Assembly: GCA_002269645.1 (NCBI GenBank)
Contig: NIVC01002505.1
Span: forward strand, 1 to 40,329
DNA length: 40,329 nucleotides
Reading direction: 5' to 3'
Source: Macrostomum lignano
Lineage: Eukaryota
Position 1 is the stretch's first letter, and every line of letters starts with the position of its first letter. Positions 4,441 through 40,329 of the stretch are shown piece by piece. A program made the translations under genes and the position numbers. Under the pieces are notes generated by a model. It was not told the DNA's origin. It searched no databases and saw only the letters and a list, made by a program, of their open reading frames with translations.

Positions 4441-4899
4441 AGGTGGTGTTTTCACTTCTTATTAAGTATATGACTAGCAGTCTAATCACTAGTAGAGGAC
4501 ATATTTTGCTTGCTCGATTAAAACTGCTGACCTAATCATAGGATTTTTCGATTCAATAAAAAATCACTTTGGCATTGTCAATAATTTTTTGTGAATCGGT
4601 TTTGACTGACTTGCTATTTTGATTGTTGCATGCTGTAGTCAGAGCGAAGAATAAAACAACAGGTGAAATTCTGATTTGGATCGAATGCACCTCTCGACTT
4701 GGATATCAGAACATAAAAATCAACCGAAAAATCTTGTCAACTAGAAATAAATAATTTATTGGCAAAGGCAGGTGTCTTTTAAACACTACTGATTGAAAAT
4801 TGGGTTGATCAGTAGTATAATCATAAATCATGATTTGAGCTATCTGCTTGGCTCAGCATAAACAGTCGGGGGGGGGGGTTGCAGATTGCAAAATTTCTG

Positions 4900-5038: not shown

Positions 5039-5117
5039 ATGGCTGCTGGACAAGTGCCGCTTCTAGCTGCTCTTGTTTGCCTTGCAGCTCTGAGTGCCCC
5101 TGCGTTGGCTCATAGTG
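5039..5117 (+). CDS. Exon 1: signal peptide MAAGQVPLLAALVCLAALSAPALAHS
   Basis: ATG at 5039, hydrophobic core, A-L-A cleavage motif, donor GTGAGT at 5118; phase 1 matches the acceptor at 5872. Too short to appear in the ORF track. Confidence 0.85.
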
Positions 5118-8100
5118 GTGAGTTTCTTTATTGTTGTTGGCGTTGAGCGGGATGCGTTACAGGTGGATGCAGGTATAGATACAGGCTTTTAAGGTATTTC
5201 TTGATGGATTGGACATTGAGGGGTAATTATAATTGGTAGATTAGGGTTGACATTGAGGTAATTTTTATTGGTAGATTGTGGTAGACATTGTGGTTAAATT
5301 ATAATTGGTAGATTAGGGTAGACATTGGGGTTAAATTATAACTGGTAGATTAGGGTAGACATTGGGAGGTAATTTTTATTGGTAGATCAGGGTAGACATT
5401 GGGAGGTAATTTTATTGGTAGATCAGGTAGACATTGAGGGGTAATTTTCATTGGTAGATCAGGGTAGACATAGAGGGGTAATTAAAATTGGTAGATCATG
5501 GTAGACATTGAGGGGTAAAATTGGTAGATCAGGGTATAAATTGAGAGGTAATTAAAATTGGTAGATTGGGGTAGACATTGAGAGGTAATTTTAATTCGTA
5601 GATCAGGGTTGGCATTGAGAGGAAATTATAATTGGCAGATCAAGGTAGACATTGAGAGGTAATTAAACTTCGTATATTATGGTAGACATTCAGAGATAAG
5701 TATGACTGGTAGTTAAAGGTACACATTGTTGAGAGGTAATAATTGGTAGATTAGGGTAGAAATTGAGGGTACTCATAACTGGTACATGTAGATTAGGGTA
5801 GACATTATGGGAGATGGAAGCAGGTGTAGATATGCTCAAATCAAAGCCATTTGTTTTCCTTTAACTCAATAGACTGTTACGCCAGCGTCGGCGGCGCCAG
5901 AGGCCATATTTATCAGTTCGATGGCGGCAGGGTGACTGCTGACCCCGCCCTCGGAGGCTGCCTTAAACGGGATCTGCTGTTGACGAGATCCGTTGCCGAC
6001 AAGGATGCTTCATCGCTGTGCGAGCTGGAGATTCTGGCCAGCTTCAAAGCTGTCAGCGGTCCGAGCAGCGGCCTGTCCCGGTTGAGTGCCGTCACCGTTA
6101 AAGTCGATGGGAAGGTCTATCGACTGCTGGCTGGGCGGAAACTCACCGTGAGTTTGGCTGGTGTTTGATTATTGTTTGGTTTGGATCTGGGAGGCTGGCC
6201 CAGCAACTGAGGATCTGGGAGGCTGGCCCAGCAACTGAGGATCTGGGAGGCTGGCCCAGCAATTGAGGATCTGGGAGGCTGGCTTAGCAACTGAGGATCT
6301 GGGAGGCTGGCCCAGCAACTGAGGATCTGGGAGGCTGGCCCAGCACTGAGGATCTGGGAGGCTGGCTTAGCAACTGAGGATCTGGGAGGCTGGCCCAGCA
6401 ACTGAGGATCTGGGAGGCTGGCCCAGCACTGAGGATCTGGGAGGCTGGCTTAGCAACTGAGGATCTGGGAGGCTGGCCCAGCAACTGAGGAGGCTGGCCC
6501 AGCACTGAGGATCTGGGAGGCTAGCTTAGCAACTGAGGATCTGGGAGGCTAGCTTAGCAACTGAGGATCTGGAAGGCTGACCCAGCACCTGAGGATCTGG
6601 GAGGCTGGCTTAGCAACTGAGGATTTGGGTGGCTGGCCCAGCAACTGAGCATCTGGGAATTCTAAAAGCTTCCTGAACTCTAGACATGTTATGCTAGATA
6701 TTCACACCCATCAGAGCCAACCCTCAAGGCGTAGAGAGTGTACATTCCTGACGATCAGAAACCGTGTACACCCCGTGGGAGCATGTGTAAGACTCTGGTT
6801 GCCCAAGGCCAAACCGATATTTCGCACAACCATCGCAGGTGAACGGCCAGCTGAAGTCGGTGCCCCACGGGCCGGACAAAGGTGTGAGGATTTTCTTCTC
6901 CGGCGAAGACCTGGTGCTGGCGCACAAGCGCTGCAACTTCTGGGTCGGCTTCGACGGAGACTGGACCGCCACCTACTGGCTGAGCGGCAAGTACCGCGGC
7001 AAGCTGGAGGGTCTGGCCGGCGACTGCGACGGACACGGCAAGGACGAAGTCGGCAGCTGGCTGTCCGAGGCTGGCTGCCGTCCGGTCAAGCGGAAGCCTC
7101 GATGCCTGAGCTCGGCCGCCAAGCGGGAGGCTGTGCACCGGTGCAGTCGGTGATTAACGGCAAGGACGGCTGCTTGAATCGAGAAGTACTGCGGCCGTGC
7201 ATCGCAGACGCCTGCTCGGCTAAGGGGGCTCTCAGAAAGAAGATTCTGTGCGCCAGCTTCTACCTGCAATCGAGACGCTGCGCCAGGCACCACAAGCCGC
7301 TGTCTTGGAGGCATCGAAGCGGATGTCGTAAGCTGTGTTTATAACTAATAAGTTGATGCGCAATTCACCTACTATGAGTAGCATCAATTAGCAATACTTT
7401 TATTCTTGTTTAAAAAAGGAAAAGTGTAGGAGCGGCTTTTTACAGGTGAAATCAGAGATAAGGTGGATATGGTTGGCGGCCCTCTCTCCTCACAGGTGAA
7501 ATCAGAGATAAGGTGGGTGGTTGGCGGCCCTCTCTCCTCACAGGTGAAATCAGAGATAAGGTGGGTGGTTGGCGGCCCTCTCCTCACAGGTGAAATCAGA
7601 GATAAGGTGGAGATGGTTGGCGGCCCTCATCTCAGGTGAAATCAGAGATAAGGTGGGGTGAGTGGCGGCCCTCTCTCCTCACAGGTGAAATCAGAGATAA
7701 GGTGGAGATGGTTGGCGGCCCTCATCTCAGGTGAAATCAGAGATAAGGTGGGGGTGGGTGGCGGCCCTCTCTCCTCACAGGTGAAATCAGAGATAAGGTG
7801 GGGGTGGGTGGCGGCCCTCATCGCAGGTGAAATCAGAGATAAGGTGCCGTGGCCTCTGATTAAATTATAGATCAAACGCATGGCTAATCGACCTAAAATA
7901 TTCAACCAAATCAGCCTCCTCAACAACAACCTTCAGCAATAAAGTGCGGCCCGAACGAGCACTTCACCAGCAGGGCCAGCCCATGTCCTGCCACATGCGG
8001 CAGTCATTTCTTCGGCACACCTAAGAAATGCTTTCACCTGCCCAGCGCCGAAGGCTGTCGCTGCAAGCGAGGCTTCGTCCTGGACAGCAGCAACCGCTGC

Positions 8101-11100
8101 GTGCCGCCCAAGGAGTGCGAGTGCCTGAACAAACTGTGCTTGGACAGAATGCCTCGGAAAAAGTGTCTGAAGTGGCGAGCTCGCGGCCGGTGCAAGAGGT
8201 ATCCGGAGGTGATGGCGCGATTCTGCCGGCTGACCTGCGGCCACTGCGAGACAAGATGCGGGGAGAATCAGTTTAGCGACAAATTGTGCAAAAATATTTT
8301 GCGGCAAGGGAAATGCAGCAAGCCGCTGTACAAGGCTGTCTGCGCGGCCACTTGCGGCCGCAATAAGTGTCGTGAGTTGCTTTTTTACGGCTCGTTCGTT
8401 TTGAAATTTTCTAATGATTTCTGGATTACGTTTAGGTGTAGAACGTGTCAGTTGGCGCCAAAATAAAGTAAGATAGCTCAAATTAAAAGTTAGTTGACGC
8501 CAAAAAGAGCGTTAAGATGGCGCCAAAATGGAGATTCAGTTAGCGCCAAAATAGAGTATCAGTTTGGGCGCCAAAATAGAGTGTCAGTTTAGGCGCCAAA
8601 ATAGAGTGTCAGTTTAGGCGCCAAAATAGAGGGTCAGTCTGGGCGCCAAAATAGAATGTCAGTTTAGGCGCCAAAATAGAGGGTCAGTCTGGGCGCCAAA
8701 ATAGAATGTCAGTTTAGGCGCCAAAATAGAATGTCATTTTGGGCGCCAAAATAGAATGTCAGTTTAGGCGCCAAAATAGAGGGTCAGTTTAGGCGCCAAA
8801 ATAGAGGGTCAGTCTGGGCGCCAAAATAGAATGTCAGTTTAGGCGCCAAAATAGAGGGTCAGTCTGGGCGCCAAAATAGAATGCCAGATAACGGAGTCAG
8901 TTAGCGCCAAAATAGAGAAGCTATCAACAATTGTTTTCTTCAATTTGTTCAAATCTTTAACATTTGAGTTGAAGCTTAAAGCCGCTCGCTAACTTTCTAT
9001 TCAGGCTGCCCAAACAAGCGCCGGATCGAGTCCAAGTGCTCCACGCGGTACAAAAATCGAATAATAAAATCGATTCGTTATCTGCCCGGTCCGCACGGCA
9101 AGTGCATCAAGAGCACTGTAGTCCGCTACGAACCGTGCGGGGGTGAGTTCGTGTTCTATGGACACCTTTTTTACATAGAAAAAAAAACTGAGGATTGCTG
9201 ATCGGGCTTTGTGAATGGCTGGTGAATGGGCTTTAGCACCAGGGGCTTTAGCACCAAGGGGCTTTAGCACCAAGGGGCTTTAGCACCAAGGGGCTTTAGC
9301 ACCAAGGGGCTTTAGCACCAAGGGGCTTTAGCACCAAGGGGCTTTAGCACCAAGGGGCTTTAGCACCAAGGGGCTTTAGCACCAAGGGGCTTTAGCACCA
9401 AGGGGCTTTAGCACCAAGGGGCTTTAGCACCAAGGGGCTTTAGCACCAAGGGGCTTTAGCACCAAGGGGCTTTAGCACCAAGGGGCTTTAGCACCAAGGG
9501 GCTTTAGCACCAAAGGGCGCCAGCACCAACGGGCGCCAGCACCAAGGGGCGCCAGCACCAAGGGGCGCCAGCACCAAGGGGCGCCAGCACCAAAGGGCGC
9601 CAGCACCAAGGTGATAAGTTACGTTTTAAGTAGCTGCAATCAACCCATTCATTTGCAGCCTGTCCCAGCATAGCCAAGACCAAGCTGCAGCCGTGCAATT
9701 ACTGCAAAGGCGTGCGAACAGGCAAGCGCACTATGCAATACCGAGAGACCCACGGTAAGCACCGCTGCCTGCGTCGAGTCACTCGAGTCAGCAAGAAGTG
9801 TCCCTGCCCTCCCTCTGGCCAGCTGAAGGTTGTCAGCAGCAGCAAATGCGTGAAACACACCGAACTGGTCCGCGTCACCAAGGTGTTCAAAGCCGCCGAG
9901 AAGTGCACCAAGTGCAAGCGAATAACCCGACGACAAGTTGTAAAGAAAATTAGTGAGCTTATAATTATAACAATTTTGTTTTTTTAAGCATTAGATTAAG
10001 GCAGGGGTTGTAGCCTAGTTGTCAGAGCGTCAGACTCGCGACTTGAAGGTCGGGGGTTCGATTCCCGATCGCACTGGAACAGTTTGTGTCCTTGAGCAAC
10101 TTAACTCTGCATTGCTTCAGTTCACCCAGCTGTAAAATGGGTGCCAGCATTAGCTGGGGTAATTGAGGGTGTGCGGTGACCCCGCCGTTAGCAACCTGCA
10201 GATGTGCCGCGCATTAGCTGCGGCTGAGCTGTCGGTTGCATATGCGGCCCAATTAGCGAGGTTACAGAGATTGTCTCTCTCAGAGAGTCACTCTCACCAT
10301 GTGTAATTTACCTTTTAATCTATCTACGCTTCTACCTTTTTAATCACAGAATGCTCGGGCAGACGAACCGTTCTCAAGAAGTGCACGTCGGGACGCAAGC
10401 ATCGCAAGAAGCTGGTGTACACTAAGCAAGCGAGAAACTGCAAATGCATCTGGAAGCTGGCCAAGGAGCAGAACCTGCTCTGCTACTGCAGCAAGAAGCG
10501 CAGCGTGAAGCGTAGTTGCTCGAACGGCTATCGGATTAAGAAAATAACTGGGTTGCGGCTCAAGAACAACAAATGCGTTCGTTGGGTGCGCCAAGTGAAA
10601 CGGAAGATTAACTGCCCCAAGAGACGCCAAGCAAAGCTGATTTGCCAACGAAAGACGTGCAAAGCGACCAAGATTTCCAGCTATTACCAGCTCAGTGGAT
10701 GCAAGTGCAGTAAAAAAGTTGTTAAGCGGCTGGTTGGAAAATGCTGTGAGTTTGGCAAAGATATTTCTATTCTGTCTTGCTTTGTCGACTCGACCTGTTT
10801 TTTTGCCAGACGTATGCCAAATTTAGCTCTACATTATACTTTCTACTCATCAGTAGACGAACTCTGACACAAAGTCTTCACTAAATAGAAAATGCGAAAC
10901 GAAACGAAGTCGAAGCTAGTCTGTATCCTTGGAAATCCTGTGCACCAGCCGCCCAGGCTCGATTCCATGTGCAGTCGCATTAATTTGGGGCTAAATTGGA
11001 ATCTCGGCTTGGCTCTGCTCGTGCAATTGAGGGCTTTGAGGGCCCACTCCCAAGGCACAGTGAAGTGTACATGCCTAACGATAAATAAAGTTATGGCCCC

Positions 11101-14100
11101 TGCGCATGACGGCGTACGTATCCGCGCGCTTGTGTGTGCCTGCTCAGGGGAGTCGGCAGAATTGGCAGTAATGCCTTTCACCGGTTGTGCAACAATGTCG
11201 CTCAAAGTTCTCCAGGCCTCCTGCCTCTTAAAAATCTTTAATTTTCAGTTTTTAGTAGTCGTTTTTGAAAACTGCTTGAATTTTTCTTAGAAACAAAGAA
11301 TTTTTCTTAGAAACATTGATTTTTTTTCTTAAAAACAACGAATTTTTCTTAGAAACATTGATTTTTTTCTTAGAAACAATGAATTTTTCTTAGAAACACT
11401 GATTTTTTCTTAAAAACAAAAAATTTTTTCACATTTTTAAAAGGTTGTCCGAAGGGCTACAAGAAAATTGTGCGAGTCGATCGCTACTGGAAGAAGCTGA
11501 TCAAGGTGCAATACCTGCTTGAAGATCACAAGTGTCGCAAGAAGACAACCACCAGAAAGTACCGGGTTGCTTGTCCACCAGCTAAAAAGGAGGCTCGATG
11601 CGACAAGGTCACCGGTGCCAAGGTGTTCAAGAAAATCTGGTACGTCCTCAAAAATGGCGACTGCGTCAAGAGGCGGTCGAAACGAGTGGCGAGACTGCGT
11701 GAGTTTCGATTTGCGCTTTTTGCTAGATTTTTGACACCTTTAAATCGCATTCCCTATCTATAAAGCTGGTGCCAGACAGTGGTAAAATACTCATTTAGTA
11801 AATATTTTAAATATTTTTGGATGGTTTCATAGATAATGATCCTGTCTAACAGGTGATGATCCTGTCTAACAGGTGATGACCCTGTCTAACAGGTGATGAT
11901 CCTGTCTAACAGGTGATGATTTTGTCTAACAGGTGATGATCCTGTCTAACAGGTGATGATCCTCTCTAACAGGTGATGACCCTGTCTAACAGGTGATGAT
12001 CCTGTCTAACAAGTGATGATCCTGTCTAACAGGTGATGATCCTGTCTAACAGATGATGACCCTGTCTAACAGGTGATGATCCTGTCTAACAGGTGATGAC
12101 CCTGTCTAAGAGGCTATGATCCTGTCTAACAGATGATGACCCTGTCTAACAGTCTATGATCCTTCTAACAGGTGATGAACTTGTCTAACAGGTAATCACC
12201 ATGTCTAACAGGCTATGATCATGTCTGATTGTCTGTATATCCCTGTCTGGAGCAAGTTATGTATTTTGTCTGTTTGTCTGTGCAATTTACAAGCTTTTCT
12301 GCAGACTAAACTGAATTAGAGTTCGAACTCACGCAGACTGCCTGCACGGTGTCTACCGACACGTCGGGCCCTGCCATCGCTCTGGCGGCAAAGGCGTCTC
12401 ACGCTATCGCAAAGTCCGCTACGAATATTATCGCCGAAAGAAGGGCAGCTGCAGCTGCGAGAAAGTCCGGCGCACCGTCAAAGAGTTGTGCGGCTGTCCG
12501 CAGGGTAACTTCGTCAAAACGACAAAATGTCCGAAGACTGGCTGCAATAGTAAGAAGTGCGGCTCCAAGTGCCACTATACTAAGACGTACTTTTACTTTA
12601 CGAAATGGTCGTATGATGGAGACAAACATCACAAGAGAAAGCACTGCCATGCTAAGGTACGTCATGAACTTTAATCTAGCCACCCGTGAAAGTTGTACCC
12701 GTCATATTTCATAAGCAATGGGAGCATCAAATGAAACTATTCCAGGTGTTTAAGCACATCCATTTCCCTTGCTGCTGCGCCAGCAACAAGCGCGTGAAGA
12801 CTTGGTGCCGTTCGCACAAGCACTCCGTCAAACAAGTCACCTACACCAAGCTCAGCAAGGACAAACACGAATGCGTCCGTTTGAGACGCACGACGACCTC
12901 CAGAATTCGATGCAAGCACAATAGCGAGGGGACCGCCATTAAGAAGCGTCTGCCGCATCCGAAGCCTGGATACTACTATATCGCCACCTATCGCTGGCAC
13001 GTGAAGAACTGTCGCTGTCTGTCAACCGTTGCCAAGCGAACCTGTCGCAAGCGATGCAATCCGACTAAAACGAGTCGACGCTGCAATCGCGTCACCGGAG
13101 AATGGATCACTAGGAAGGTGAGCTGGAAGCTGCGCGGCTGCCGGACCTGCGTTCAACGGGTGCGAGAGGCTCGAACTCCCGTGCATTGTCGACGGAAGAC
13201 AAAACGAACTAAACGGTGCGACAAAAAAACTGGTATTTTAACCGTCACGGTGACGCATTGGAAGCGCAAGGGATGCAAATGCGTGCAAAAGAAGCGAGTC
13301 ACACGAAGACGTTGCAGTGAGTGCAAAATTCCCTTTAAATATTCAACTGCAGCACCGGTAGTTGATTTTTCGGCTAATTTAAGCTAATCTTTTATTTCAG
13401 AATGCCCCAAGCCGATCGTTGGAAAACGCCACTGCGACCACGAGTCGAGCGCTTACGTCACTCGCACCACCTACTGGCTGTTGAAGTCTGGAAAGTGCGT
13501 CAAGCGACGCAGAGTCAAGGTCAGCCAAGTGACCTGCTCGCATAGCGTCAAACGAAAGAGCGTCTGCAAAGCAAAGTCGGGAGTGAAGTTGGTCTACATT
13601 GGAGTTTTGAAGCCTAAAGGATGCCGCTGTGTCAGGCAATGGTCTCTAGAGAATCGACTTCGGTGCAGTAAGTAGTCTGCACATTGTCATCATTATCTGA
13701 CCTCTACAGACGATATCATACAGAATGAAAGCAACTTTTTCCTCAGATTGCAACCGTGAGAACAACGAAGCCAAGCAGGACCGCAGAAAATATTGCGATA
13801 AACATCGCAACCTGAAAGTGACAGTAACCTATCGCTACGTGCTGAAGAAGGGTTCCTGCGTTCGCAAGCGTCAAAAGAGATATCGGGCGTACAGCTGTCC
13901 GCCATCGTTCACCGAGAAGAAAAAGTGCGACGTTAAACGACGCATTCAGGTGACGCTGACGCACTACTCGGTCAAGCGGAAGTGCTCCTGCGTGCGAGCA
14001 GTTAAGCGCCGATCGCGCAAATGCGGATGCGCTCACAAGGTGCGCCGGAAACGCTATTGTCGCAGAGCTGAGGGCGTAGTAGTGACCGAATTGCATACTG

Positions 14101-20100: not shown

Positions 20101-23100
20101 TACAAGAGCTGTCCGTAAGTTTAACCTTTTTTCGGTAAAAAGCTACTCATATTAGCGATGCAAATTACTCCTAAATATAATGTATTTATCGTGCAACACT
20201 CAATCAGGCTGCAGTCGTCGCCACATCAAGCGAATTTTGAAGGGCACCTGTGTGAAAAAGGCTGGTCATAAGCGCCGCGGCTACCAGAAGCTGTTACGGC
20301 TGTGGCACGAGCGTCGTGGTTGCAAATGCTACCGAAAACGAGTCTATTCCTGGGTGCCATGCGTCTGTCACCTGATTAAGAAATACCGAACAAAACGATC
20401 GGTTTATTGCAGCCGGGGTCACGTGACTGTTCACAAGAAAGTTTATTACGTTCTAAAGAGGAAGAGCCACAGATGTGTAAAGCGTGTCCACAAACGAAGG
20501 ACTCCAGTTGGTGAGATTTATGTTTAAGCTTATTTACTGGTTTTAAGCTAATCTGTAGGCAGCACAAAGCAAATCGAAATTCAGGATAGTTGGTTAGGTA
20601 TCTATTTAGGTCTACAATCAGTGAATTTAGGTTAGTTATAGTTGTACTGATGCAATGTCTACTGATGCAATAACTTCCAGTATGCAAGGGCACCAGGACC
20701 CGACGCAGTCGTTGCAAGCCAAACGGCAAAGGCGACAAGTTTTCTGTCACACGAGTTCTGCGTCAGCGCAGCGATGGCAAATGCGGCTGTGCTTGGCGTT
20801 CGGAGAGCACGCGTAAAAATGTTTGCCACTGCCGTCCACCTCGCCGAATTAAGCGCTGCGTGCAGAATAAGACGCGTCAACAAATCCTTATCCGCTACCA
20901 CCCAGTTCGCGGACGCAGTCACTGCAAAGGAAAGCGCCGTGTTTACAACAAGCATCTGTCCTGCCCGAGCAACTTCTCCCGACGAGACAAGTGTCATCGA
21001 TGTACCTTTTCAGTTAGAAAATACGCTTATCATCCGGAAAAGTGTCGCTGCGTAGCACGAAAGGTTGCCACAAAGCGACTCCGCTGCTGCTGTCCAAATC
21101 CTGTCACAAAGCGTCACTGCGATGCCAAACGACATATGATTGTCACCGTCAGGAGCATCTACAAGCTGCGACACCATCGCTGTCATCGCCGACGCGTCAC
21201 GCGCACTCGCCGAGTTCGTTGTGGACGAACGCGACCCCTATACCGCGTGTCTAAGTGCAGCAAGGACGGTTTCCGTAAAATTCGCAAAATGTGGCGTTAC
21301 ACGGTCGGTTGCTTGTGTCGCAAGCGCACGGTTGTCCGCAAGCAACGTTGCTCATGCCCGCACGCTCGCGTCTACAAGCCCGGAAAGTGTGGTCGCCGCT
21401 TTGCTCACGACGTCTGGCTAGGTTACAAACTAAAAGACACTGGCGTGAAAATTCCCGGCACCAACAAACCAGTGTTAAAGTGCGTAAAAGTGGTTGTCGA
21501 TAAACGAAAGCGCCGTTGCCGCTGTCCAAAGCCATACCGTCGGTCGATCTGTCGTAGAGATAACCTCATTCTCCGGATAACCGTTTCTTATCGCCTGCAC
21601 GCTAATAGCTGTCAGCGAAAGCGAGTTGTTCGTAAGCGACGCTTGTCCTGTCGTCGTCGTCCCCACCTTGTTCGTCGGATAGTATCGCCAGAAAAGTGTT
21701 CAGCAAAGCATGGCTATTCCCAGAAACTAACATACATTTACGTGCATGCAAAGGGCTGCCATTGTAGAAAGACCCGACGAGTGAAGCATATAATCTGCGA
21801 CTGTTTCCGCAAGTACGGTGGCAAAAAACATCACGTTAAATGCGTTAAGCACAACCGGCTGTTTAGGCGCAGCTTTTGGATGGCAAAGCGCGGTAAAGGC
21901 TGCGTAAAGCGAGTCAAAACTGTCGCCAAGACAATCCGTTGTGCCAAGAAGGTACGCATTCGTTCCGGTCCGTGTAAGCGCTCGAGCGGGAAGAAATCTT
22001 TCCGTATCTATCATCTGGTTGCCCGTCACTGTCGCTGCGTTTGGCAGCTGGTGCGCCGCGCAAAAGCTGCTTGCCGATGTCCGCCATCGAAGCGCTCCAC
22101 GCGTTGTCACAAGAATGCTAGCTGGGTGACAACCAAGTTCAAGTGGCGTCTAGTTGGAAGCGGGCCAAAAGCTCGCTGTGTCCTGCACAAGCGGAAAATA
22201 GTGCGCCATATCAAGTGTCGGGTTGGTCGACGAGTTCGTCGCTCAAGCCGCTGCAATAACTCAGGCTACAAAGTCACCGAAGCCACTACTCGAAGACTAG
22301 TTAAATGCAAGTGCATGAAGCGCACTGAACGTCAAAAGTGCAGGTGCCGATGCCCAAAGAATCGTAAAGCGCGCGTATGTCGCGGCAGTGTGTGGGTGAC
22401 GGAGCGCATTACTCACAAGCTGGCCAAGTGCGCTTGCAGAACAACGCGTCAAGTGATTAGAGAGCCGGTTTCCTGTCCGAAGAAAACTCGAGTACAAGGC
22501 CCCTGTCGGCGTGGCAAAAACGGAGATTTCTACAAAAAAGTTGTGCGAACAAGTTGGAGGATTAGTGGGTAAGCTTTGCATTCACGGACTTTGTATTTTC
22601 ATTGACACTATGCGATGTACAAATACAAACTAGGCCTTTATAGAAAATTTGTGATCCATTTTTAAACAAATGACGTTCATTGATGATTTTCATTTTTAGC
22701 TGCAAATGCAAACGCATCCGCAAAATCCGACACCGCCTCTGCGGCTGCGACGCCCAACAACTTAAGCGTCGCATTTGCGAATCTGGATTTGTTCGCGTCA
22801 CAGTCGTCTGGAAGCGACTGTTAGTTAACAATGCATGCCGCCGAGTGCGAAAGTATCGGCGAAAAGAACGCCTTCACTGCGGCCGGGTTCAAGTGCGTCG
22901 AGTGTGCGACAGACGGAGCGGCAAATTGAGCGTGTTTGTTATTAGGCCCTACGCCAAGAGTTGCCGTTGTCATAAGCGTGTGGTTCGGCGCCTACGACGA
23001 TGCGGTGAGCCGATGCTCAAATTATAGATAAATGGCACTTTCCCAATAAGAGCTCATTAGCAGTGCTTCGTCTTAGCTAGTTGTAGCCTACTAGTTGGAG

Positions 23101-26100
23101 CGTCGGGCTCACGACTTTGAGGTCGGGGGTTCGATTCTCGACCCATTAGGAACAATTTGTGTCCTTGAGCAAGACACCTAACTCTGCATTGCGTCAGTTC
23201 ACTTTTAGCTGTAAAATGGGTGCCAGCATTAGCTGGGGTAATTGAGGATGGGTGTGGTGACCTCCCCCCAGTCCTTGGACTGAACAGCTGTACGCTGCCT
23301 TCAGATGCGCCGCGTAATAGCTTCGGCTGAGCTGTCGGTTGCACATCTGCCCATTAGTGTAGGTGTAGTAAATTATTATTCATATTATTAGTGTTATGAT
23401 ATCAAGTAAATCAATGCGTCTTTAATAATTTTAGGCTGCCACCAGCGCCGCAAGATGAAGGTTGGAAAGTGCAACCGTCATACGTGCCGGCAGCGGCTGC
23501 TGTACTTGCGTCGAGTATTCAACAAGGCGTCCGAAGAGTGCGTATGGCGACGTTATCAAAAGCAGCGGACCTGCTGCTGTAAGGGAGTGAAACGCCTGGA
23601 AAAGTGCAAGCACAAAGAGGGCCAACGAGTAGTCAAGGTTCTTAAACGTGTGCTCAGACATTGGAGCTGCGTCACTGTGGCGACAGAAGTCCGTCATCAA
23701 ATCAGTAAGTGAAATTAAAGCTTTGCTTGACATAACTAGTAAATTTATCTACAATTTCGCAACTTTTCGTTCCAGAATGCAAGCGTCATTTGACTGTACT
23801 GAAAAAGCGTCAGAAGAACGGAGTCCTCAAGCTGGTCAAGTGTTGGACGGTGCGCAAAGGTTGCGGTTGTGGCAAAAGATGTAAAACAATTTTCCGACGC
23901 TACCGTAAGTACTGAATGTTTCGTTGTTTCCCTTTATATTCTAAAGATAGAAAGATTTGGCTCTACTGTGTCAAAGTACCAATCATACCCACCCGACAGG
24001 CTGCAAGCGTCCATTGAAACGCAAGAGATGCATCTGTGTCAATGGCAAGTGTCGCACCCAGCTTATGTTAAAGCATTGGCGTCTGACCCACGGCGGATGC
24101 TACGGCCAGATCCGGGTCCGCACTCGGCCCACCGTTTGTCCGCCAGTGCTATTCAGTCAAAGCAGATGCGCCGTGCCTACAAAGTACGGCTTCTACCGCG
24201 TTAAGCGCACTGTTCACTGGCGCCAGAAGCGCTGCCGTTGTGTGCGCATCATCAAACGTCAATCTGTCGTGTGTCGCTGCTGGCGATCAAGCTCGAAAAA
24301 GCACTGTCATCGACGACGCGGATTGATTGAACACATCCGAGTTCACTATCGAATCAACAAGGGCCGTTGCGTGAAAGCGATCAAGCGAACGCAGCATCGG
24401 GTGAAGTGCGGTCATAAAACCTGGCGCTATTCGCGACGAGTTGCCCACCCGAAGCGCAAGGATGTACACTTGAAGATCTACGTAAAACACGTCCGAATTG
24501 GTTGCAATTGTAAGAAACAAATTAAGCGAGTGCCCTGCAGATCAAGGTTAGCTGCTACCTTTATTTCGAGGTCTGGGCTTCCATTAAAATATTATTAATT
24601 TTTTGTTTCTAATCTACTATTTACTCACCCCAGGTGCCGACCATGCATCAAAAAGCGTCGCTGCAGCTCCGCTGGTAGAGTACTCGTCAGTTCAAGAATT
24701 TGCTGGCACCTTTCTAATTGTCGATGCATCCGTCGTGTGGTCGTCAAACGACACCGTGTACGCTGTCCGCGTTCTCGACGTCGGACAATCTGTCACCGTA
24801 GCAAAAAGTGTGCCATTGCAATAGCCACTAAGCAATACCGTGTTCAAGGTTGCCGATGCGTAGCAAAAAACAAAGTGCATCGAACTGGCCGAAAGTGCTG
24901 CTGTCCTGGGCCAAAGAAAATTCGCAAATGCGTCCGCGGTTCCATACGCCATCGAACTGTGCGCTACCAGTTGCGCGATGGTCGATGCCACGCTATCGTT
25001 TCCAATGCCTTCCGACCAGTACAATGTCCCAAAAAGCGTCGCCACGTTGTTCGCGGACGCTGCCGTAACGGTCGACAGGCCTACGTCCAGCACTTTTGGA
25101 CTAAGCGTGGCTGTCGATGCGTTCGAGTGAAACGCTCCTATCACCGCCGATGCGGTTGTCGGTACAAGATAGTCGAGCTGGTTGTCGCTGTGGATCTTCA
25201 TTCTTCGGTGAAGGAAGGCAGTCCAAACTATCGATCGCACGTCTCCGATTTTCTTGAAGTAGTCCTGCGCCAATTCGAATCCGGCTCAGCGAAGGTTCGC
25301 ACGGTGTTGTTCACATACAGCTCAACTGTGCGCAAGCATCATATCGAGTCCAGCGAGAATGATGCTTCTGCATTGTTCAACGATTTCACCAACAGTAAGA
25401 CAAATCTTTTCGGCGCTCTGAAAGCTATTAAGGCTCACCTGGTTCGCAGCAGGCGTCAATATTCGAATAAAGTCAAGCGAATCGTGCTCGTAGTGACCAG
25501 AGGAAGACATACAAAGAGCAGGCGCTCGATTTTACTCGCGGATAAGATCAAACACATGGCTCGATTGTTCGTCATCGGATTCGGTTCGCTGCCTAAATCG
25601 GGTCGCTATGTTAAATGGTTGGCTAGCAGGCCAAGACGGGTGCATTATCTGAGGATGAAGAAGACACAAAAGTAAGTCTAGGCAATAACTCCTGACTATC
25701 CGGACATATAAGTAGTATAAACGCATATAAATTTCAAAAGTACCAAGCACAAAACATCTTGGTACTTAGTATTGTTCTTAATAAGACAAAAAGCATTCAG
25801 AGGCTGGTTAAGGTCAGGTAAAGTTCCTGGACCAAGTTCCAGTGCTCGTAGTAGTAACGAACGATTAATTATTTACGATCCGCGCAGTCAGTAGTAAGTA
25901 TAGTTAAGTAGCCAATAGTAAGCACCATTGATTTTTCAGATACAAGTTCATCGCTTCGCGAATCTTTGAGCACGCCTGTCGCAAGCATTGTCGACGACGG
26001 CCTAAACGTCATATTGGCAAGTGCAAGCGCGACACGTGCCGTCGTCTGCTTACCGAAGTCACGTGGCATCGCGACAAGCGCAGCGGAAAGTGCGTCCGAC

Positions 26101-29100
26101 GCCGCCGGACAAAATCTCGCACCTGCTGCTGTAGAGGTCAAAATTCGAATCGCCTGGTGTGCAGAAACGGTCGCCGACTTCGAATCATTGTCCGATACAA
26201 GTTCGACGGGCGTCGAGGCGTCTGTCATAGGCGAGTTCATAAAATCGACACCTCAGCCTCGCTACACGCTCGCTGCCGTCCAGTCAAACTGCGACGTCGC
26301 GGCTCTTGCGATGCTAAAGGCTGGCGTCGCGACGTTTTGGTACATCGCTACGTCACTAAGAAATCTTGTCGATGCCACACAAAACGGCGCCACCTACGCG
26401 CTGTTCGCTGCCGTTGTCCATCGACTAAACGTCAGCAAAAATGTCGACGCAATCGACGCGGTCATTGGTACCGCGTTACCTGCCGTATTGAGTACAAACT
26501 GCATCGTCGCGGTTGCAAAAAGCGGAGACATTGTTCAAAGCGTCGAGTCGTTTGTCGACACAAGAAAAGAGTTGTCCGGGTTCGAGGCCGGTGCCATCGA
26601 CATAGCTGCCGTCGCCGAAACAGTGTAGTCACATACAGCGTTCATAAATGTCGCTGCAGGAAAAGAGTCAAGACTTTAACTCAAGTCTGCTGTAAGTATT
26701 CGTAAGAGTATTTGCATGCGTGCTTAGAATACAAAAATGCGTCTTGCTCGTTGAAAACCAGCCACGTATGCAAAAAGCAGGCGCGGCGCATCCAAAGGCT
26801 GTGTACAGCTAGGTGCCCATAACTTCCGTCCAGAATTTTCACCACAGCTCAGGGCCATCTATCATATCAGAGTTAGGTAAAGTGAAGCTCAACTTCATTT
26901 TTTGTCTTTTCTTACTGTGGCTATTTTGAGGGGTGACACTATACGACGTAGCCTATTAGGTTGCGCACTAACCGCGAAAAACTCTGCTTAACTTGCCTCT
27001 CTAGCAGTGAATTTACTAGCCTACTAAGCTAGGGACCTTCTGGCCTACTAGAGCGCTATTATGGCATTACAAAAGTCGCTCTATTAAAACATTTTCGGAA
27101 CATTTTCAACAGGCTGCAAGCGAAAAAGTCGTAAGCACAGTTTCTGCAACAAGCGCCGACACGCTATAGTTCGAGTTAAAACGCACTACCGCCTGGTTCA
27201 CGGCGCTTGTCGCCCTGTCTCGCGCAAGACGGAGCACCCCATCCGATGTCGCACCGATCGTCGTAAGCTACCGGGCCACTGCCGACGCCACAAAAACGGC
27301 TTTTATCGACGCGTAGTCACGCAGACCTGGCATCGACGTGGCTGTCGTTGCATTCGACGAACACGTAAAAGTGGTTTGCGCCTTTGCCGATGCTCGTCGA
27401 AGAGACGCAAAGTTCAGCGCTGTCTGTCGCGACGTGGAGTGATAGTTACAATCGAGAGTTGGCTGCATCCGCGCGGCAACAGCTGTAAACTGCGCAGTCG
27501 CACCGTCGGCCGAGAGCGAGTCACCTGCAGCCATCGTCGCGTTCGAGTTAAGGGTCGCTGCGGTCGCGGCAAAGCGGCAAAGGCGGCCGCTGCTGCAGCG
27601 AAGGACGGTCGGAAATTCGCTATTGAAACTGTCACGTGGCAGCGCAGGGCTGGCTGCAAGTGCAGGCAAGTTGAAGCGTTTTTGATCTTGATTTGTTTAT
27701 CTTGTCTTTTATCTTTCTGTTTTATCTTTATCGTCTTTTTGCAGACGGATCCGCCGCTCCCACGTCCGCCTCTGTGCATGTACAAAACGCGTTCGTCGAG
27801 TGACACGTTGCCATGCCAACCGCCAACTTTCGGTTACGCTTTATCATCACCGTCTGGCGCATTCTCGCAATGGATCTGCGACATGCAAAATCGTACGAAA
27901 AACTCGCCGCCACCGAGTCCGCTGCCGTCGACCAGTGATCCGCATGGGACGAAAATGTCACTCAGGCAAACGAACTGTCATCGTTAAAGTCTTCACGCCG
28001 AAGAAATGTCGCTGCAAAGCAAAACTTTACCGACGTTTGATAGCCTGCAAAGCCGCCTGCACTGACAAGCTTCCTAGCAAGGTGTGCAAGAAGTGGGCCG
28101 CATCTCGTAAAATTAAGATTTGCCGTCGACACCCCCACTTGGCTGATCGGCTGTGCGCTGCAACATGTGGAAAATGTAAGCTTAGGATAGTGGAACTGTC
28201 TTCGATTTTCCATTTTTATAACTAAGTTATGACTCTATTTAATTTACCATCAAACAGGCTGCAGCAAATCGACAATCGTCCACGTAGGAGAGCACTGTCT
28301 GCTGGCTCAAAATCGTACACTGCTTGCCAGTCAAAATGATACGAGTAGCAACCATAAACTTACCCTTGCAAAGCTGACCACGTTTGAGGCCTGCAGCCGT
28401 TCCTGCTTGGCTAATCCTCACTGCCGAGCCTTTGACTATAAACGCAGCAGCGGCCACTGTCGCCTGCTCCGCATCAACCACCACAGCCTCGACCGCGACC
28501 TTCCGGAACTCAAGCCCACCCCGGGCTGCCTGCTGTTCGAAAAAGCTTGTCAACGAAAGCCAAAAGGCTGCCCGCATCGACGCATTCAGAAGTCTTGGGC
28601 CTGCGTTTGTCGTCGATTCTTTGGCAAGGATCGACGTCCGCTGTGTTATCGACGCGCTCTCATCGCTGTTTACTTCCGACGCAGCCGCCGCCGCTGTGTC
28701 CACAAACTTCGCCGAATTTTAATTCCTTGCCACGATTGCGAGGACAAGAAGCGCTGGTGCCAACAAGCCGCTCGTAAGGGCAAGTGCGCCAAGGATTCCC
28801 GCGTGAGAAAACTTTGTCCGCACAGCTGTCACAAGTGCGCCCGACATCGCACTCGGGCAGGACGCGCAGGTCATGGTCATCGGCTAATGCGCCGTCGCAT
28901 TAGTGCTTGCTCCAAATCTGGCTGGCGTAAGATCGTTCGAGGTGGACTGTACTACGACAGGCGACTGAAGCTGTGGCGAGTTTATAAGGGAGTGAGTCAC
29001 AAACGCTGCATTCGCTGCCCAATCGGTTCCAGACTGATTGTTGGACGCTGCACCAAGCACGGCAAACGGAAGCTGACCTGGATTGTGGTTACTAGACACA

Positions 29101-29664
29101 GTCGTCGGGGTCATCACGGTCGACCCTGTCGAATCAAAAAGAAACATCGCCTGGTGAGCTGTCGCGGCTGCGGCGGACTCGATATAGTTCGAAAAGTTGG
29201 CCATTGCGTTCGCAAGCCGGGACACGGCTGGCACCGCGTGGTGACGAGTACATTCACGGAGCGCAACAGTCGTAAGCATCGCTGCATTGTGCGCCACCAT
29301 AAGAACACATTCGCGTGCTCGCCGAAGTGTCCCAAGCGTAGCGTTAGCCGGTCTCGGTGCAAGTGCGGCCGTCGCGTTGTTTGCACTCGGTATTATGTCA
29401 CCTACCCCGGTCGGCGCCGCTGCGTGGCTAAGAAGATCACCCGAAGCGAGAAATGCGTCAGTGCCGCCTCTGGTAAGAACCGTCCTTGACGTCAAATTAC
29501 TTTTTACAAGCATGAACAAATTCACTATAGTGATCTACAATTTCTAACTCTTTTTAGATTGCAACGATCAAATCAAGGCGCACGATTGTCAAGCAATCAA
29601 GCACTCGGGAATGTGCTCTACGCTGCACCGTCTATGCGCGAAAACTTGCGGTCGCTGCAAGTAG
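5039..29664 (+). CDS. Giant secreted Lys/Arg/Cys-rich multidomain protein (~5,476 aa): SP-VWD-C8-TIL-ShKT x2-(K/R/C modules)n-vWA-(modules)-ShKT-PAN-ShKT-(modules)-ShKT. Candidate adhesive, mucus or extracellular structural protein.
   Basis: Hand-spliced join(5039..5117,5873..6147,6839..7327,7937..8371,9005..9142,9659..9952,10350..10745,11444..11698,12337..12656,12746..13316,13401..13667,13747..14163,14239..14370,14493..15345,15489..16414,16505..16789,16873..17010,17103..18024,18112..18419,18521..19166,19275..19504,19599..20114,20208..20510,20681..22568,22700..23004,23435..23704,23776..23904,24000..24546,24634..25671,25940..26691,27113..27665,27745..28175,28258..29472,29558..29664). All 33 introns have matching phases (32 GT-AG, 1 GC-AG). 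Exons total 16,430 nt, one short of 5,477 codons, which matches the frameshift near 7144. Stop TAG at 29662-29664. Confidence 0.88.
5200..5810. repeat. Diverged ~30-36-bp minisatellite in intron 1 (GGTAGACATTGAGGGTAATTATAATTGGTAGATTAG-like)
   Basis: Recurring GGTAGACATTG and ATTGGTAGAT motifs. Confidence 0.85.
5873..7327 (+). CDS. Exons 2-3: von Willebrand factor type D domain followed by a C8 domain
   Basis: CYASVGGARGHIYQFDG...GC, KLT|VNGQ, GLAGDCDG and SWLSEAGC match VWD hallmarks. PCIADAC...C..FY...RRC...LSWRHRSGC matches C8. C8 is in a shifted frame after ~7144. Confidence 0.8.
6183..6657. repeat. 28-bp minisatellite in intron 2 (GGATCTGGGAGGCTGGCCCAGCAACTGA)
   Basis: Unit starts at 6183 and 6211; about 17 units. 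Confidence 0.95.
7440..7846. repeat. 46-50-bp minisatellite in intron 3 (CAGGTGAAATCAGAGATAAGGTGG...GGCGGCCCTC), 9 copies
   Basis: CAGGTGAAATC at about 7443, 7493, 7541, 7587, 7633, 7682, 7728, 7778 and 7824. Confidence 0.95.
7937..8371 (+). CDS. Exon 4: TIL domain plus two ShKT domains
   Basis: CGPNEHFTSRASPCPATCG...C...GCRCKRGFVLDSSNRCVPPKEC is TIL. CLDRMPRKKCLKW..RGRC......ARFCRLTCGHC and C......DKLCKNILRQGKC....YKAVCAATCG are ShKT-like. Confidence 0.88.
8530..8905. repeat. 25-bp minisatellite in intron 4 (GGCGCCAAAATAGAATGTCAGTTTA)
   Basis: Direct periodicity. Confidence 0.95.
9005..28040 (+). CDS. Exons 5-32: long array of ~40-50-aa Lys/Arg/Cys-rich modules, interrupted by vWA
   Basis: Recurring patterns CP(K/R)P-x5-C-x6-W/V-x6-Y/W-x-L-x2-G-x-C-x10-12-C and C-x3-(T)C-x8-Y-x4-C-x-C-x9-CCC; very few acidic residues. 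Confidence 0.85.
9228..9611. repeat. 16-bp minisatellite in intron 5 (AAGGGGCTTTAGCACC, switching to AAGGGGCGCCAGCACC at the 3' end)
   Basis: Direct periodicity. Confidence 0.95.
10004..10255 (+). mobile_element. tRNA-derived SINE, copy 1 (intron 6)
   Basis: A-box-like TAGCCTAGTTG, B-box GGTTCGATTCCC, central GTGTCCTTGAGCAA...CCAGCTGTAAAATGGG; closely similar copy at 23080-23356. Confidence 0.8.
10948..11146 (+). mobile_element. Second interspersed repeat family, copy 1 (intron 7), possibly SINE-like
   Basis: CAGGCTCGATTCCA.GTGCAGTC.CATTAATTTG...GAATCTCGGCTTGGCTCTGCTCGTGCAATT and GCGTACGTATCCGCG..GTGTGCCTGCTCA are shared in inverted orientation with 30444-30630. Confidence 0.7.
11281..11425. 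repeat. ~20-bp AT-rich tandem repeat (TTTTTCTTAGAAACAAAGAA / ...ACATTGA)
   Basis: Direct periodicity just upstream of the exon 8 acceptor. Confidence 0.85.
11835..12222. repeat. 20-bp minisatellite in intron 8 (GGTGATGATCCTGTCTAACA)
   Basis: Direct periodicity, about 19 units. Confidence 0.95.
23080..23356 (+). mobile_element. tRNA-derived SINE, copy 2 (intron 25)
   Basis: GTTGTAGCCTA..AGTTGGAGCGTC...GGTCGGGGGTTCGATTCTCG...GTGTCCTTGAGCAAGACACCTAACTCTGCATTGC...GCTGTAAAATGGGTGCCAGCATTAGCTGGGGTAATTGAGG, as in 10004-10255. Confidence 0.8.
25168..25980 (+). CDS. Degenerate von Willebrand factor A domain (exon 29 and start of exon 30)
   Basis: ELVVAVDLHSSV...VRTVLFTYSS...KTNLFGALKAI...KRIVLVVTRGRH...ARLFVIGFG...WLASRP follows the vWA motif order. 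Confidence 0.8.
28048..29664 (+). CDS. C-terminal cap: ShKT, PAN/apple, ShKT, basic Cys modules, terminal ShKT
   Basis: CTDKLPSKVCKKWA...CAATCGKC; TFEACSRSCLANPHCRAFDYKRSSGHCRL (PAN); CEDKKRWCQQAARKGKC...CPHSCHKC; CNDQIKAHDCQAIKHSGMCSTLHRLCAKTCGRCK*. Confidence 0.85.
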
Positions 29665-29777: not shown

Positions 29778-29783
29778 AATAAA
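29778..29783 (+). terminator. Probable polyadenylation signal of the giant gene
   Basis: AATAAA about 115 nt after the TAG stop. Confidence 0.6.
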
Positions 29784-31909: not shown

Positions 31910-32530
31910 ATGTCTCCAACCGCAACCTTGGCGTCCGCAACTTGGCCAGTCTGTTTGGCACTCGTCACCTCGGCTATCAGCGCGGGCGTACTGGTGGCAG
32001 CGGCTCTCTACTGCTGCCTCCGGGACACAAGTCGGTTCACCTGCTGCGGCGCTGAGTTTTACTTTGCCTCCGAACTGTCGTCCTGGAGCGACTACGATGA
32101 ACCCGGATGTACATGTAGCAGCGGAATCGGTGACGCCGCTACCACATCCGTCAGCCACTATTCAACGCACTGTCGATATCAGCGTCAGGCTGCACTGTTG
32201 TCCTCACCGACAATGTTTCAGCAGCAGGGCGACAGCGGCAGCCTCAGGCTTCAACCGATGACCTCATCGACTGTGATTAGTAACCACAGCAACGCGAGCT
32301 CCCTACCTGTAACGCCTCGAACCGTGGATGAAACTCGAGTGCTGTTAGTACCCACGGTAGTCGAGCTAGACGACGACGAAGAATGCGACGAGTTTGTTGA
32401 TGGCGACAACGGAGCTCTGCAAACAGCTACTGCGTCGTCTCGGTTTGCTGCTCTGATCAATAGCGGATCTAGTGGGTCAGCTGGACAGCGAATGGGAGCT
32501 GAAGCGCCTTGTAGACGAGACTATGTGTAG
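31910..32530 (+). CDS. Probable single-exon orphan single-pass membrane protein, 206 aa
   Basis: gccATG start with an upstream in-frame TGA at 31877; hydrophobic VCLALVTSAISAGVLVAAALY followed by CC; Ser/Thr-rich and acidic tail; GC-rich against AT-rich flanks. No recognisable domain. Confidence 0.55.
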   Translation: MSPTATLASATWPVCLALVTSAISAGVLVAAALYCCLRDTSRFTCCGAEFYFASELSSWSDYDEPGCTCSSGIGDAATTSVSHYSTHCRYQRQAALLSSPTMFQQQGDSGSLRLQPMTSSTVISNHSNASSLPVTPRTVDETRVLLVPTVVELDDDEECDEFVDGDNGALQTATASSRFAALINSGSSGSAGQRMGAEAPCRRDYV

Positions 32531-32629
32531 CGATGTACGTTGAATAGTTGAAGAACGTTTTGCTGACCAAGAATTGCGTAACCTGCTTTGAAATTTACTT
32601 ACAGTACGCGTACTTTGATAGCAGCCTAT

Positions 32630-39168: not shown

Positions 39169-39180
39169 CTGGGTGTTGTT

Positions 39181-40329
<1,149 letters not shown>

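Follow-up and report, generated by a model that had tools for sequence, protein, structure and literature searches.

Work on reversible bioadhesion relies mainly on the flatworm Macrostomum lignano as its model, and two giant proteins currently account for the glue of this animal. Mlig-ap1, the cohesive protein of the temporary adhesive, has 5,407 amino acid residues. Both of its ends are lysine- and arginine-rich (KR) regions made of low-complexity Gly/Arg/Lys repeats, and its core is composed of a C-lectin domain, a vWD-C8-TIL unit and 17 EGF domains, with no vWA domain (PMC6410801). Mlig-ap2 has 14,794 residues and comprises repeats of 221-255 residues together with vWD, TIL, LDLa and TSP-1 domains (PMC6410801). 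The two genes are found on scaf1170 and scaf3366. In Theama, the central repeats of the ap2 type are 330 and 230 residues long, and in both Minona and Theama a protein of its own, ap3, makes up the basic part; it is a low-complexity Gly/Arg/Lys(His/Ser) protein with GRK and GRKHS repeats. In the published model of adhesion, positive charge serves cohesion and a negatively charged factor serves release (PMC6410801). A differential transcriptome and two in situ screens yielded ten adhesive-organ transcripts, all of which belong to ap1 or ap2. Here, we analyzed a stretch of 40,329 nucleotides of the M. lignano genome (assembly GCA_002269645.1, contig NIVC01002505.1, positions 1 to 40,329 of the forward strand), hereafter referred to as the window. 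A preliminary description, made from the letters of the window, had placed in it one giant gene and had proposed that its product may be an adhesive or an extracellular fiber. As read from its sequence, this is a real M. lignano gene, almost unannotated in public databases, and it encodes a predicted secreted protein of 5,474 residues, most of which is built from tandem copies of a small, Cys-rich, strongly basic module.

The plus strand of the window, from about 5.0 to 29.7 kb, is densely filled with stretches free of stop codons, in which Lys, Arg and Cys abound and Asp and Glu are nearly absent. The gene model was rebuilt without using the earlier one, by dynamic-programming exon chaining with codon log-odds, trained on the longest open stretches, and simple GT/AG scores. 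Because this training is biased to the K/R-rich body of the protein, the 5' end of the chained model is unreliable, and it was curated by eye. The model has 34 exons and agrees with the preliminary description, at both ends and in the number of in-phase exons, given a correction of one base within the C8 domain. Strong GT-AG consensus sites delimit all 33 introns; the donor of exon 1, for instance, reads gtgagt directly after position 5117. There are 24 introns in phase 1, seven in phase 2 and two in phase 0. Most of the phase 1 introns are located at one point of the repeat, between C and x-C-P, which is the start of a module, as is characteristic of modules that have multiplied by exon shuffling. 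The coding sequence of 16.4 kb is intact apart from the correction in C8, and a reading frame of this length with canonical splice sites is far beyond chance. The model is independently backed by a paralogous M. lignano locus, which is collinear with residues 6-4467. Furthermore, the junctions between exons 4 and 5 and between exons 5 and 6 are matched by UniProt fragments with 96-100% identity.

The break in the frame lies within C8. The frame of the preceding VWD domain meets a TGA at 7150-7152, and the conserved middle of C8, VINGKDGCLNREVLRPCIADAC, is encoded one frame over. One added base anywhere in 7147-7151 restores HRCSRVINGKDGC; probably, GGG was read as GG. At the paralogous locus (P0001), the equivalent segment, ERACRKVIGRHGCSNTEVLRPCVIDYC, runs through C8 in a single frame, and the public fragment P0046, which is another copy of the same gene, has CSRVINGKDGC, the corrected junction. 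A small intron was also considered. The sole GT-AG option, 7150-7235, would give 35 exons and 5,446 residues, and it was rejected in favor of a one-nucleotide indel because it loses three of the eight conserved Cys of C8. The break most likely reflects an assembly error in a G-run; a genuine lesion of this copy is less likely. If it were real, the copy would be a recently disabled pseudogene, truncated within C8 at about position 7149, a reading that takes its strength from the in-frame TGA and from the lack of a GT-AG intron that rescues the conserved C8 reading. We regard it as very improbable, since no further stop or frame break interrupts the other ~15 kb of coding sequence, every splice site is intact, and the out-of-frame segment still encodes conserved C8 residues, with 13 of 21 identical to the paralogue. 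Moreover, other public copies read through the site, and one G missing from a G-run would be a typical error of long-read assemblies.

The predicted protein has a mass of about 647.5 kDa, an isoelectric point (pI) of 11.2 and a net charge of +1,489. Lys makes up 13.4% and Arg 17.3% of the residues (K+R 30.7%), Cys 9.4%, His 4.9% and Gly 4.9%, while Asp and Glu together amount to 3.5%. The protein can be described as composed of a signal peptide, a VWD-C8-TIL head followed by two ShK-like domains, a body of about 3,860 residues, a VWA domain, a second body of about 540 residues, and a C-terminal ShK-PAN-ShK-tail-ShK cap (Table 1). Domain scans thus bear out the single giant Cys-rich polycation with a VWD-C8-TIL head, an embedded VWA and a ShK/PAN cap that had been proposed before. 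The signal peptide was judged by eye from its hydrophobic core and its cut between ALA and HS; the paralogue P0001 has the same signal peptide, which is followed directly by VWD. The VWD domain begins in exon 2 with CYASVGGARGHIYQFDGG, is split by intron 2 (691 nucleotides) and continues in exon 3, from 6839, with VNGQLKSVP. C8 has no Pfam match, and it was recognized by alignment; in its C-terminal half, and jointly with TIL, it can be aligned to the C8-TIL segments of FCGBP, MUC2, MUC5B and VWF. The UniProt fragments identical to the ShK-like part of the head carry the label 'ShKT domain-containing', and the second copy in the head has no ShK match and is defined by its six-Cys pattern only. 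Of the five ShK copies, two are above the Pfam cut-off, two are below it and one has the Cys pattern only. VWD and TIL each occur once in the scanned parts of the protein. The scanned exons, which include most of the body, gave no match to EGF, C-lectin, TSP-1, LDLa or CTCK. The C-terminal 525 residues contain PAN only, plus ShK when the ShK domains are scanned singly, and no CTCK. There is no Pro/Thr/Ser-rich region, with a maximum of 25 such residues in any 100-residue window of the protein.

Table 1 Features of the giant gene in the window. Residue numbers refer to the protein after one frame correction. GA, Pfam gathering cut-off; ShK domains were scanned singly (GA 20.9).
Feature	Position	Strand	Evidence or remark
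Coding span, ATG to TAG	5039..29664	+	34 exons, 5,474 residues after one frame correction
Exons 1-9	5039-5117; 5873-6147; 6839-7327; 7937-8371; 9005-9142; 9659-9952; 10350-10745; 11444-11698; 12337-12656	+	
Exons 10-18	12746-13316; 13401-13667; 13747-14163; 14239-14370; 14493-15345; 15489-16414; 16505-16789; 16873-17010; 17103-18024	+	
Exons 19-27	18112-18419; 18521-19166; 19275-19504; 19599-20114; 20208-20510; 20681-22568; 22700-23004; 23435-23704; 23776-23904	+	
Exons 28-34	24000-24546; 24634-25671; 25940-26691; 27113-27659; 27745-28175; 28258-29472; 29558-29664	+	
Exon 1, start codon and signal-peptide-like N-terminus, MAAGQVPLLAALVCLAALSAPALA then HS	5039..5117	+	putative signal peptide ~5039-5110
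VWD, residues 28-198	5875..7078	+	Pfam 31.6 bits, GA 22.9; aligns to FCGBP VWD domains
C8-like, residues 207-281, exactly 8 Cys	7103..7326	+	alignment; conserved in paralogue P0001
Apparent one-nucleotide deficit in C8	7147..7151	+	tcggtgatt, in-frame TGA next; window frame 1 to frame 0
TIL, residues 285-344	7945..8124	+	Pfam 36.8 bits, GA 24.5; 100% identical to UniProt A0A1I8FGR0
Two ShK-like, residues 349-385 and 389-426	8137..8370	+	first copy 28.3 bits, above GA
Body I, residues 427-4290	9005..25168	+	exon 5 to first part of exon 29; tandem ~45-residue modules
VWA, residues about 4291-4457	25169..25671	+	Pfam 39.8 bits, GA 23.8; Cys-free
Body II, residues 4459-4995	25940..28057	+	same ~45-residue modules; 34.8% K+R
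ShK-like 3, end of exon 32	28058..28175	+	15.1 bits, below GA; six-Cys pattern aligns with family ShK
PAN/Apple, residues 5036-5132	28260..28550	+	Pfam PAN_1 38.2 bits, GA 21.4; conserved across family
ShK-like 4, residues 5195-5228	28737..28838	+	18.1 bits, below GA; kept in all aligned family members
C-terminal tail, 3-4 Cys modules, residues 5229-5439	28839..29471	+	Cys positions conserved from Macrostomum to cestodes
Last exon, terminal ShK (29560-29658) and TAG (29662-29664)	29558..29664	+	ShK 21.1 bits, above GA
AATAAA, polyadenylation-signal-like hexamer	29778..29783	+	sequence read; ~115 nucleotides past stop

The composition of the two bodies is nearly the same, with 32.6-34.8% K+R, 2.8-2.9% D+E and 9.3-9.8% Cys (body I: 32.6%, 2.9% and 9.8%, respectively). 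Self-comparison of the body revealed a unit of about 92-97 residues that also matches itself at offsets of about 46 residues. An iterated hidden Markov model found 66 copies of a module of about 45 residues at a domain E-value below 0.01, and 87 copies at an E-value below 1; the number of copies is at least 66 and probably about 85. The consensus consists of C-x-C-P-x7-9-C, about 19 residues of alternating hydrophobicity, C-(x-C) and a K/R-rich tail. The modules are of two alternating subtypes (alignments A1 and A2), and they abut directly, sharing Cys clusters (CCC or CxC) at their boundaries. AlphaFold2 predicted one di-module as an all-beta structure with a mean predicted local distance difference test score (pLDDT) of 95.4 and a predicted template modeling score (pTM) of 0.68. 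In this model, each module would be made of a short strand and a 12-residue two-stranded beta-hairpin pinned by the conserved Cys. No Pfam or NCBIfam family matched the module. A Foldseek search against the PDB gave a best E-value of 0.6, with spurious matches to strands of the green fluorescent protein, and a sequence profile of the module found no chain at E<=10 among PDB sequences, although such fold and profile searches are weak for small disulfide-rich repeats. The module could thus be described as a domain that has a high-confidence AlphaFold2 model and is without a Pfam family or a detectable relative in the PDB. The preliminary description had called this body ap1-like, a likeness that does not hold for an array of at least 66 copies of a predicted folded disulfide module.

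Comparison with the closest paralogue, which is 44% identical, shows which features of the module have been kept. Between the two proteins, 98-99% of the Cys and 79-85% of the aromatic residues are conserved. Positions with Lys or Arg stay basic in 55-64% of cases, compared with a background of about 30%, and only 13-14% of the His are conserved, i.e. His is not conserved. The conservation of Cys and of K/R positions shows that selection keeps both the disulfide scaffold and the charge.

Public proteomes contain the gene only as short, partly frameshifted fragments, named 'ShKT', 'VWFD', 'NTR' or 'TRAF-type domain-containing'. A search with the head only recovered M. lignano UniProt fragments 98-100% identical to exons 4-6, and at E<=1e-3 it returned fragments of the same gene only, without ap1, ap2 or any mucin. 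Three models, P0043, P0045 and P0046, were at first taken for a group of paralogues of 57-63% identity; they are frameshift-corrupted models of the same gene from an older assembly. In the first search, the sole relative was BOX15_Mlig029998g6, a partial model with 44% identity. It could have been an orthologue from another species, but the 98-100% identical M. lignano fragments of the window gene exclude this, and BOX15_Mlig029998g6 is thus a paralogue. Collinearity of its locus with the window protein extends over residues 6-4467, up to the end of the flank that was compared, with 34-50% identity. The C-terminal part of the window protein matches two more M. lignano fragments, one of which belongs to the Mlig029998 locus with 94-100% identity. 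This locus is on NIVC01002243.1, at 10001-27720 and beyond. The NCBI model ends at 1,526 residues, and collinear coding sequence rich in K, R and C continues for at least 10 kb past that end. UniProt A0A1I8HV10 is from the same locus, so the paralogue is split and truncated in public annotation. Its introns are fewer and shorter than those of the window gene.

To look for more distant relatives, a profile of the module, built from alignment A1 on the window protein, was searched against 1.84 billion representative proteins, and 29 multi-module proteins were found. Since the profile comes from the window protein itself, it is the matching of other proteins that shows the membership of a family. 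In M. lignano, further members are encoded at loci 022069 (Mlig022069g3), 008915 (Mlig008915g3) and 000884. Members were also found in monogeneans (Cichlidogyrus casuarinus Ciccas_003938 and Protopolystoma), in a fluke (Echinostoma caproni A0A183A713) and in tapeworms (Sparganum proliferum SprV_0501750900 and Dibothriocephalus latus A0A3P6TW38). One bacterial protein among the matches was rejected as spurious. The relatives have the module in tandem, with up to 47 matched stretches per protein. The large members that retain their C-terminus have in common a cassette composed of ShK, PAN, a module, ShK and the tail, with conserved Cys positions. It aligns to proteins of the Mlig029998 type, to Mlig008915, to the Cichlidogyrus and Sparganum members and to a metagenome protein, and also to a MetaClust protein without the PAN segment. 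The embedded VWA is found in Sparganum, in Cichlidogyrus P0031 and in the M. lignano paralogues, and the terminal ShK exon of the window gene has a counterpart at the end of Mlig008915. Pfam scans of three whole giants (P0041, P0020 and P0012) found nothing at E<=1e-3, which is uninformative because short domains are diluted in long proteins.

The Cys content is constant across the family, at 7-10%, while the charge is not. Members from the parasitic flatworms (Neodermata) have 15-19% K+R, 10-13% D+E and a pI of about 9; the window protein, Mlig029998 and some fragments from raw reads (runs SRR23162813 and SRR3932155) have 26-37% K+R and little acid. One Logan contig, SRR23162813_88057, has 5,606 nucleotides at 37% GC and is filled from end to end with module frames rich in K, R and C, at 32-33% K+R; a single uninterrupted open reading frame of 1,329 residues runs in it. 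Such frames on a contig of 37% GC point to at least one other organism with hyper-cationic members. The VWD-C8-TIL-ShK-ShK head was not seen in the models of the parasite proteins, which are partial, whereas the window protein has it in common with Mlig029998. In the model of Mlig022069 (P0032), the same unit is at the opposite end, and about 1,600 residues of modules precede it; this is either a true difference in domain order or the result of a model that joins or truncates neighboring parts. Members of the family carry automatic names only, and none has been characterized. No published description of the gene or of the family was found in the literature on the gene identifiers, rhabdite chemistry, cell atlases or ShKT/VWD flatworm proteins, in agreement with the earlier proposal that the protein may be undescribed. 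That proposal had not noted the relatives, which show that the architecture recurs in a conserved family. As judged by these comparisons, the window protein belongs to a previously undescribed, flatworm-wide family of giant Cys-module proteins, which has several paralogues in M. lignano.

Of the described proteins, Mlig-ap1 is similar in general character: it is from the same species, of similar size, secreted and very rich in Lys and Arg, and it has vWD-C8-TIL and a Cys-rich part. However, the D assembly is N-terminal in the window protein, the basic region is predicted to consist of folded Cys modules, VWA, PAN and ShK are present, neither C-lectin nor EGF was matched, although calcium-binding EGF domains form an array in the core of flatworm ap1, and the gene is on another scaffold. 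The body also differs from the flanks of ap1 and from ap3, with 9.3-9.8% Cys, a Gly content of the whole protein as given above, and no low-complexity Gly/Arg/Lys repeats. Unlike ap2, the window protein has a repeat of about 45 residues (about 92 as a pair), and TSP-1 and LDLa were not matched. It is thus distinct from both adhesive proteins in scaffold and architecture, as had been supposed. The domains then listed for ap1 were right as to C-lectin and EGF, wrong as to vWA, and left out vWD-C8-TIL (PMC6410801). The head, which had been likened to that of ap2, had no ap2 match at the threshold given above, and its nearest relatives among proteins of solved structure are generic D assemblies. 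The best of these is FCGBP (E=2.6e-50, summed over repeats), followed by MUC5B (1.6e-5), MUC2 (3.3e-5) and VWF (2.7e-4). The window protein resembles FCGBP, MUC2, MUC5B, MUC5AC and VWF in having the VWD-C8-TIL unit and in being giant, disulfide-rich and, by prediction, secreted. It differs from the mucins and VWF in that it has one D assembly, while these have several in the N-terminal region (D1-D2-D'D3), which drive multimerization there, and in that no central, heavily O-glycosylated Pro/Thr/Ser (PTS) region and no C-terminal cystine-knot dimerization domain (CTCK) were found; mucins are also polyanionic after glycosylation, whereas this protein is polycationic. Another point of comparison is given by the Pc proteins of the sandcastle worm and the basic foot proteins of mussels, which are secreted and very basic, and which probably pair with polyanions before they are cross-linked. 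Those cement proteins are small and largely disordered and use the chemistry of 3,4-dihydroxyphenylalanine (DOPA) or phosphoserine, while the window protein is giant and predicted to be made of folded disulfide modules. We know of no homology between them.

We give about an even chance to the explanation that the locus is a functional M. lignano gene for a secreted, disulfide-locked structural polycation of about 650 kDa that would bind polyanions. The module array would form an extended chain, locked by disulfides, resistant to proteases and shear, and carrying about +27 net charges per 100 residues. Because the density of positive charge is so high, polyanions would have to neutralize it for packaging. 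Both in the secretory pathway and after release, the protein would be neutralized by, and condense with, sulfated glycans or acidic proteins, and once released it would attach to surfaces of negative charge as well. Through its D assembly, VWA and PAN, the protein could link covalently or non-covalently to itself or to partners, giving a gel, a fiber or the matrix of a granule. Candidate materials are gland, mucus or rhabdite material, egg cement and the egg envelope. Extracellular domain types only, together with the selection on charge between paralogues, argue for this explanation. Within its old, flatworm-wide family, the window protein is by sequence the most cationic member, and since other members are only mildly basic, its extreme charge would be a derived specialization for a secretion of free-living flatworms. 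Parasitic flatworms are not known to have duo-gland organs or rhabdites, and the presence of the family in them suggests an ancestral role common to all flatworms. A more specific reading seems possible, if doubtful. It would make the family flatworm-specific, with giant extracellular proteins and a new disulfide-pinned beta-hairpin, and would see in the Macrostomum protein a covalently stabilized polycationic rod of about 650 kDa, a novel type of protein building block for a polyelectrolyte secretion whose assembly and dissolution are controlled by polyanions. Such a rod may serve as granule or rhabdite matrix, as egg cement or as a so far missed part of reversible adhesion.

Several points weigh against the structural polycation. 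The explanation stands on sequence and predicted structure; within it, secretion depends on an N-terminus judged by eye, and the binding and condensation of polyanions follow from composition. The AlphaFold2 input alignment had 22 sister repeats, all from the same protein. The copy is one base short in C8, and if this is real it would be truncated after about 222 residues. The metal-ion-dependent adhesion site (MIDAS) motif of VWA is degenerate, reading DLHSS. Multimerization, which the preliminary description had raised by suggesting that the protein may be polymerizing, gains no support from the domains: there is a single D assembly, the 'CGLCG' motif of VWD reads GLAGDCDG, and neither a CTCK nor a PTS region was found.

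The conservation of the family suggests a different role. The protein could be a scaffold of the extracellular matrix or surface coat (basement membrane, tegument or epidermal coat, or egg envelope) that acts through the binding domains VWA, PAN and ShK in an essential job common to it and its parasitic homologues, with charge as a lineage-specific tuning. The module, VWA and the ShK-PAN-ShK cassette are indeed conserved from Macrostomorpha to Monogenea, Trematoda and Cestoda, the MIDAS of the Sparganum member is intact (DESVS), and the neodermatan members, with a pI of about 9 and 10-13% D+E, indicate that the family fold needs no charge. Yet the window gene and its closest paralogue keep K/R positions basic well above background, which argues that charge itself is selected, and with several paralogues in M. 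lignano the ancestral role may belong to one that is less basic, e.g. Mlig008915. We consider such a scaffold unlikely for the window protein. Another reading is that of a precursor: a polyprotein cleaved at basic sites to yield a large number of small peptides that are cationic, disulfide-rich and of antimicrobial or toxin-like type. Each module is small, strongly basic, Cys-rich and defensin-like, ShK domains are known from toxins, and the protein has 46 R-x-K/R-R motifs. These furin-like motifs occur within the module, at two offsets rich in K/R, instead of marking a regular linker between modules. The modules abut and share boundary Cys clusters, the di-module was predicted with confidence as a single unit, neither acidic spacers nor pro-pieces occur, and VWD, VWA, PAN and the mildly basic homologues of the parasites are in keeping with a structural protein, all of which makes such a precursor improbable.

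A role in adhesion, proposed before, would make the protein a third component of the temporary adhesive of the duo-gland organs, i.e. a cohesive polycation beside Mlig-ap1 and ap2 that is released by a polyanion. It is attractive in the species of ap1 and ap2, for a protein that resembles ap1 in size (5,474 and 5,407 residues), K/R content and vWD-C8-TIL, and the published model likewise assigns cohesion to positive charge and release to a negatively charged factor (PMC6410801). Against it, the adhesive-organ transcripts all belong to ap1 or ap2, as mentioned above, the sequence is unrelated to the KR regions of ap1 or ap3, and the family is present in flatworms without duo-gland organs. Moreover, a search of partial mass spectrometry tables of footprints, tails and pull-downs for 17 tryptic peptides, predicted from less basic parts of the protein, recovered none, a weak negative because the tables are partial and the protein is a poor tryptic substrate. 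The adhesive role is thus unsupported and mildly disfavored, and we see only a slight chance that the protein is such a third component. Besides ap1 and ap2, the footprint table (dataset S2, PMC6410801) lists, with 81 peptides, a protein of 6,570 residues, 763 kDa and pI 9.7 that is annotated with VWA and as zonadhesin/FCGBP-like. It was considered as a member of the family and rejected, as its peptides match none of the family members compared; it is another giant secreted protein, undiscussed in that paper.

The gene lies in a repeat-rich region. Introns 1-8 have 397-755 nucleotides, and of the 25 later introns 21 have 71-170 and four have 268-430. Seven of the first eight introns, all except intron 6, each contain their own unrelated minisatellite, at 5212-5784, 6183-6658, 7442-7846, 8519-8887, 9228-9611, 11277-11428 and 11836-12226, with periods of 37, 28, 46, 25, 16, 20 and 20 bp, respectively. 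The window starts with a 20-bp tandem array (3-466). A satellite with a 22-bp unit, about 131 copies and a strong skew of G over C follows at 1582-4444, and the stretch from it to the start codon showed no coding sequence. Downstream, an ATG-started open reading frame of 206 residues on the plus strand (31910-32527) has a hydrophobic, membrane-anchor-like N-terminal part, an acidic tail and no Pfam match. At 32628-33739, about 34 copies of a 33-bp tandem repeat with 93% identity are open in several frames on both strands and give long spurious reading frames (FKHTGRRI and LNTPEEGL). Two exons of a TRAF-type gene are on the minus strand (36347-36682 and 38791-39180); one has MATH (PF21355, 83.3 bits), the other a coiled-coil and the start of MATH. 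The M. lignano model A0A1I8JNR8, in which a TRAF-type N-terminus is fused to the head of the giant gene, looks like a mis-joining of neighboring genes. A (TTAG)n microsatellite of about 286 units (39181-40329) reaches the end of the window.

For M. lignano, the finding adds to the two giant proteins of the glue a third giant protein, predicted to be secreted and even more basic, together with several paralogues, all of them effectively invisible in annotation. It would be a natural case of a folded, disulfide-locked polycation, by prediction, as against the disordered KR-rich stretches known so far, and as such it could interest developers of biomaterials, for example of coacervates, heparin-reversible glues and antimicrobial coatings. 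Should the protein be expressed in ordinary matrix, what remains of the finding would be a new domain family and a corrected model of the gene, both still of use for annotation. The presence of the family in monogeneans, flukes and tapeworms may mark an unknown extracellular structure of all flatworms.

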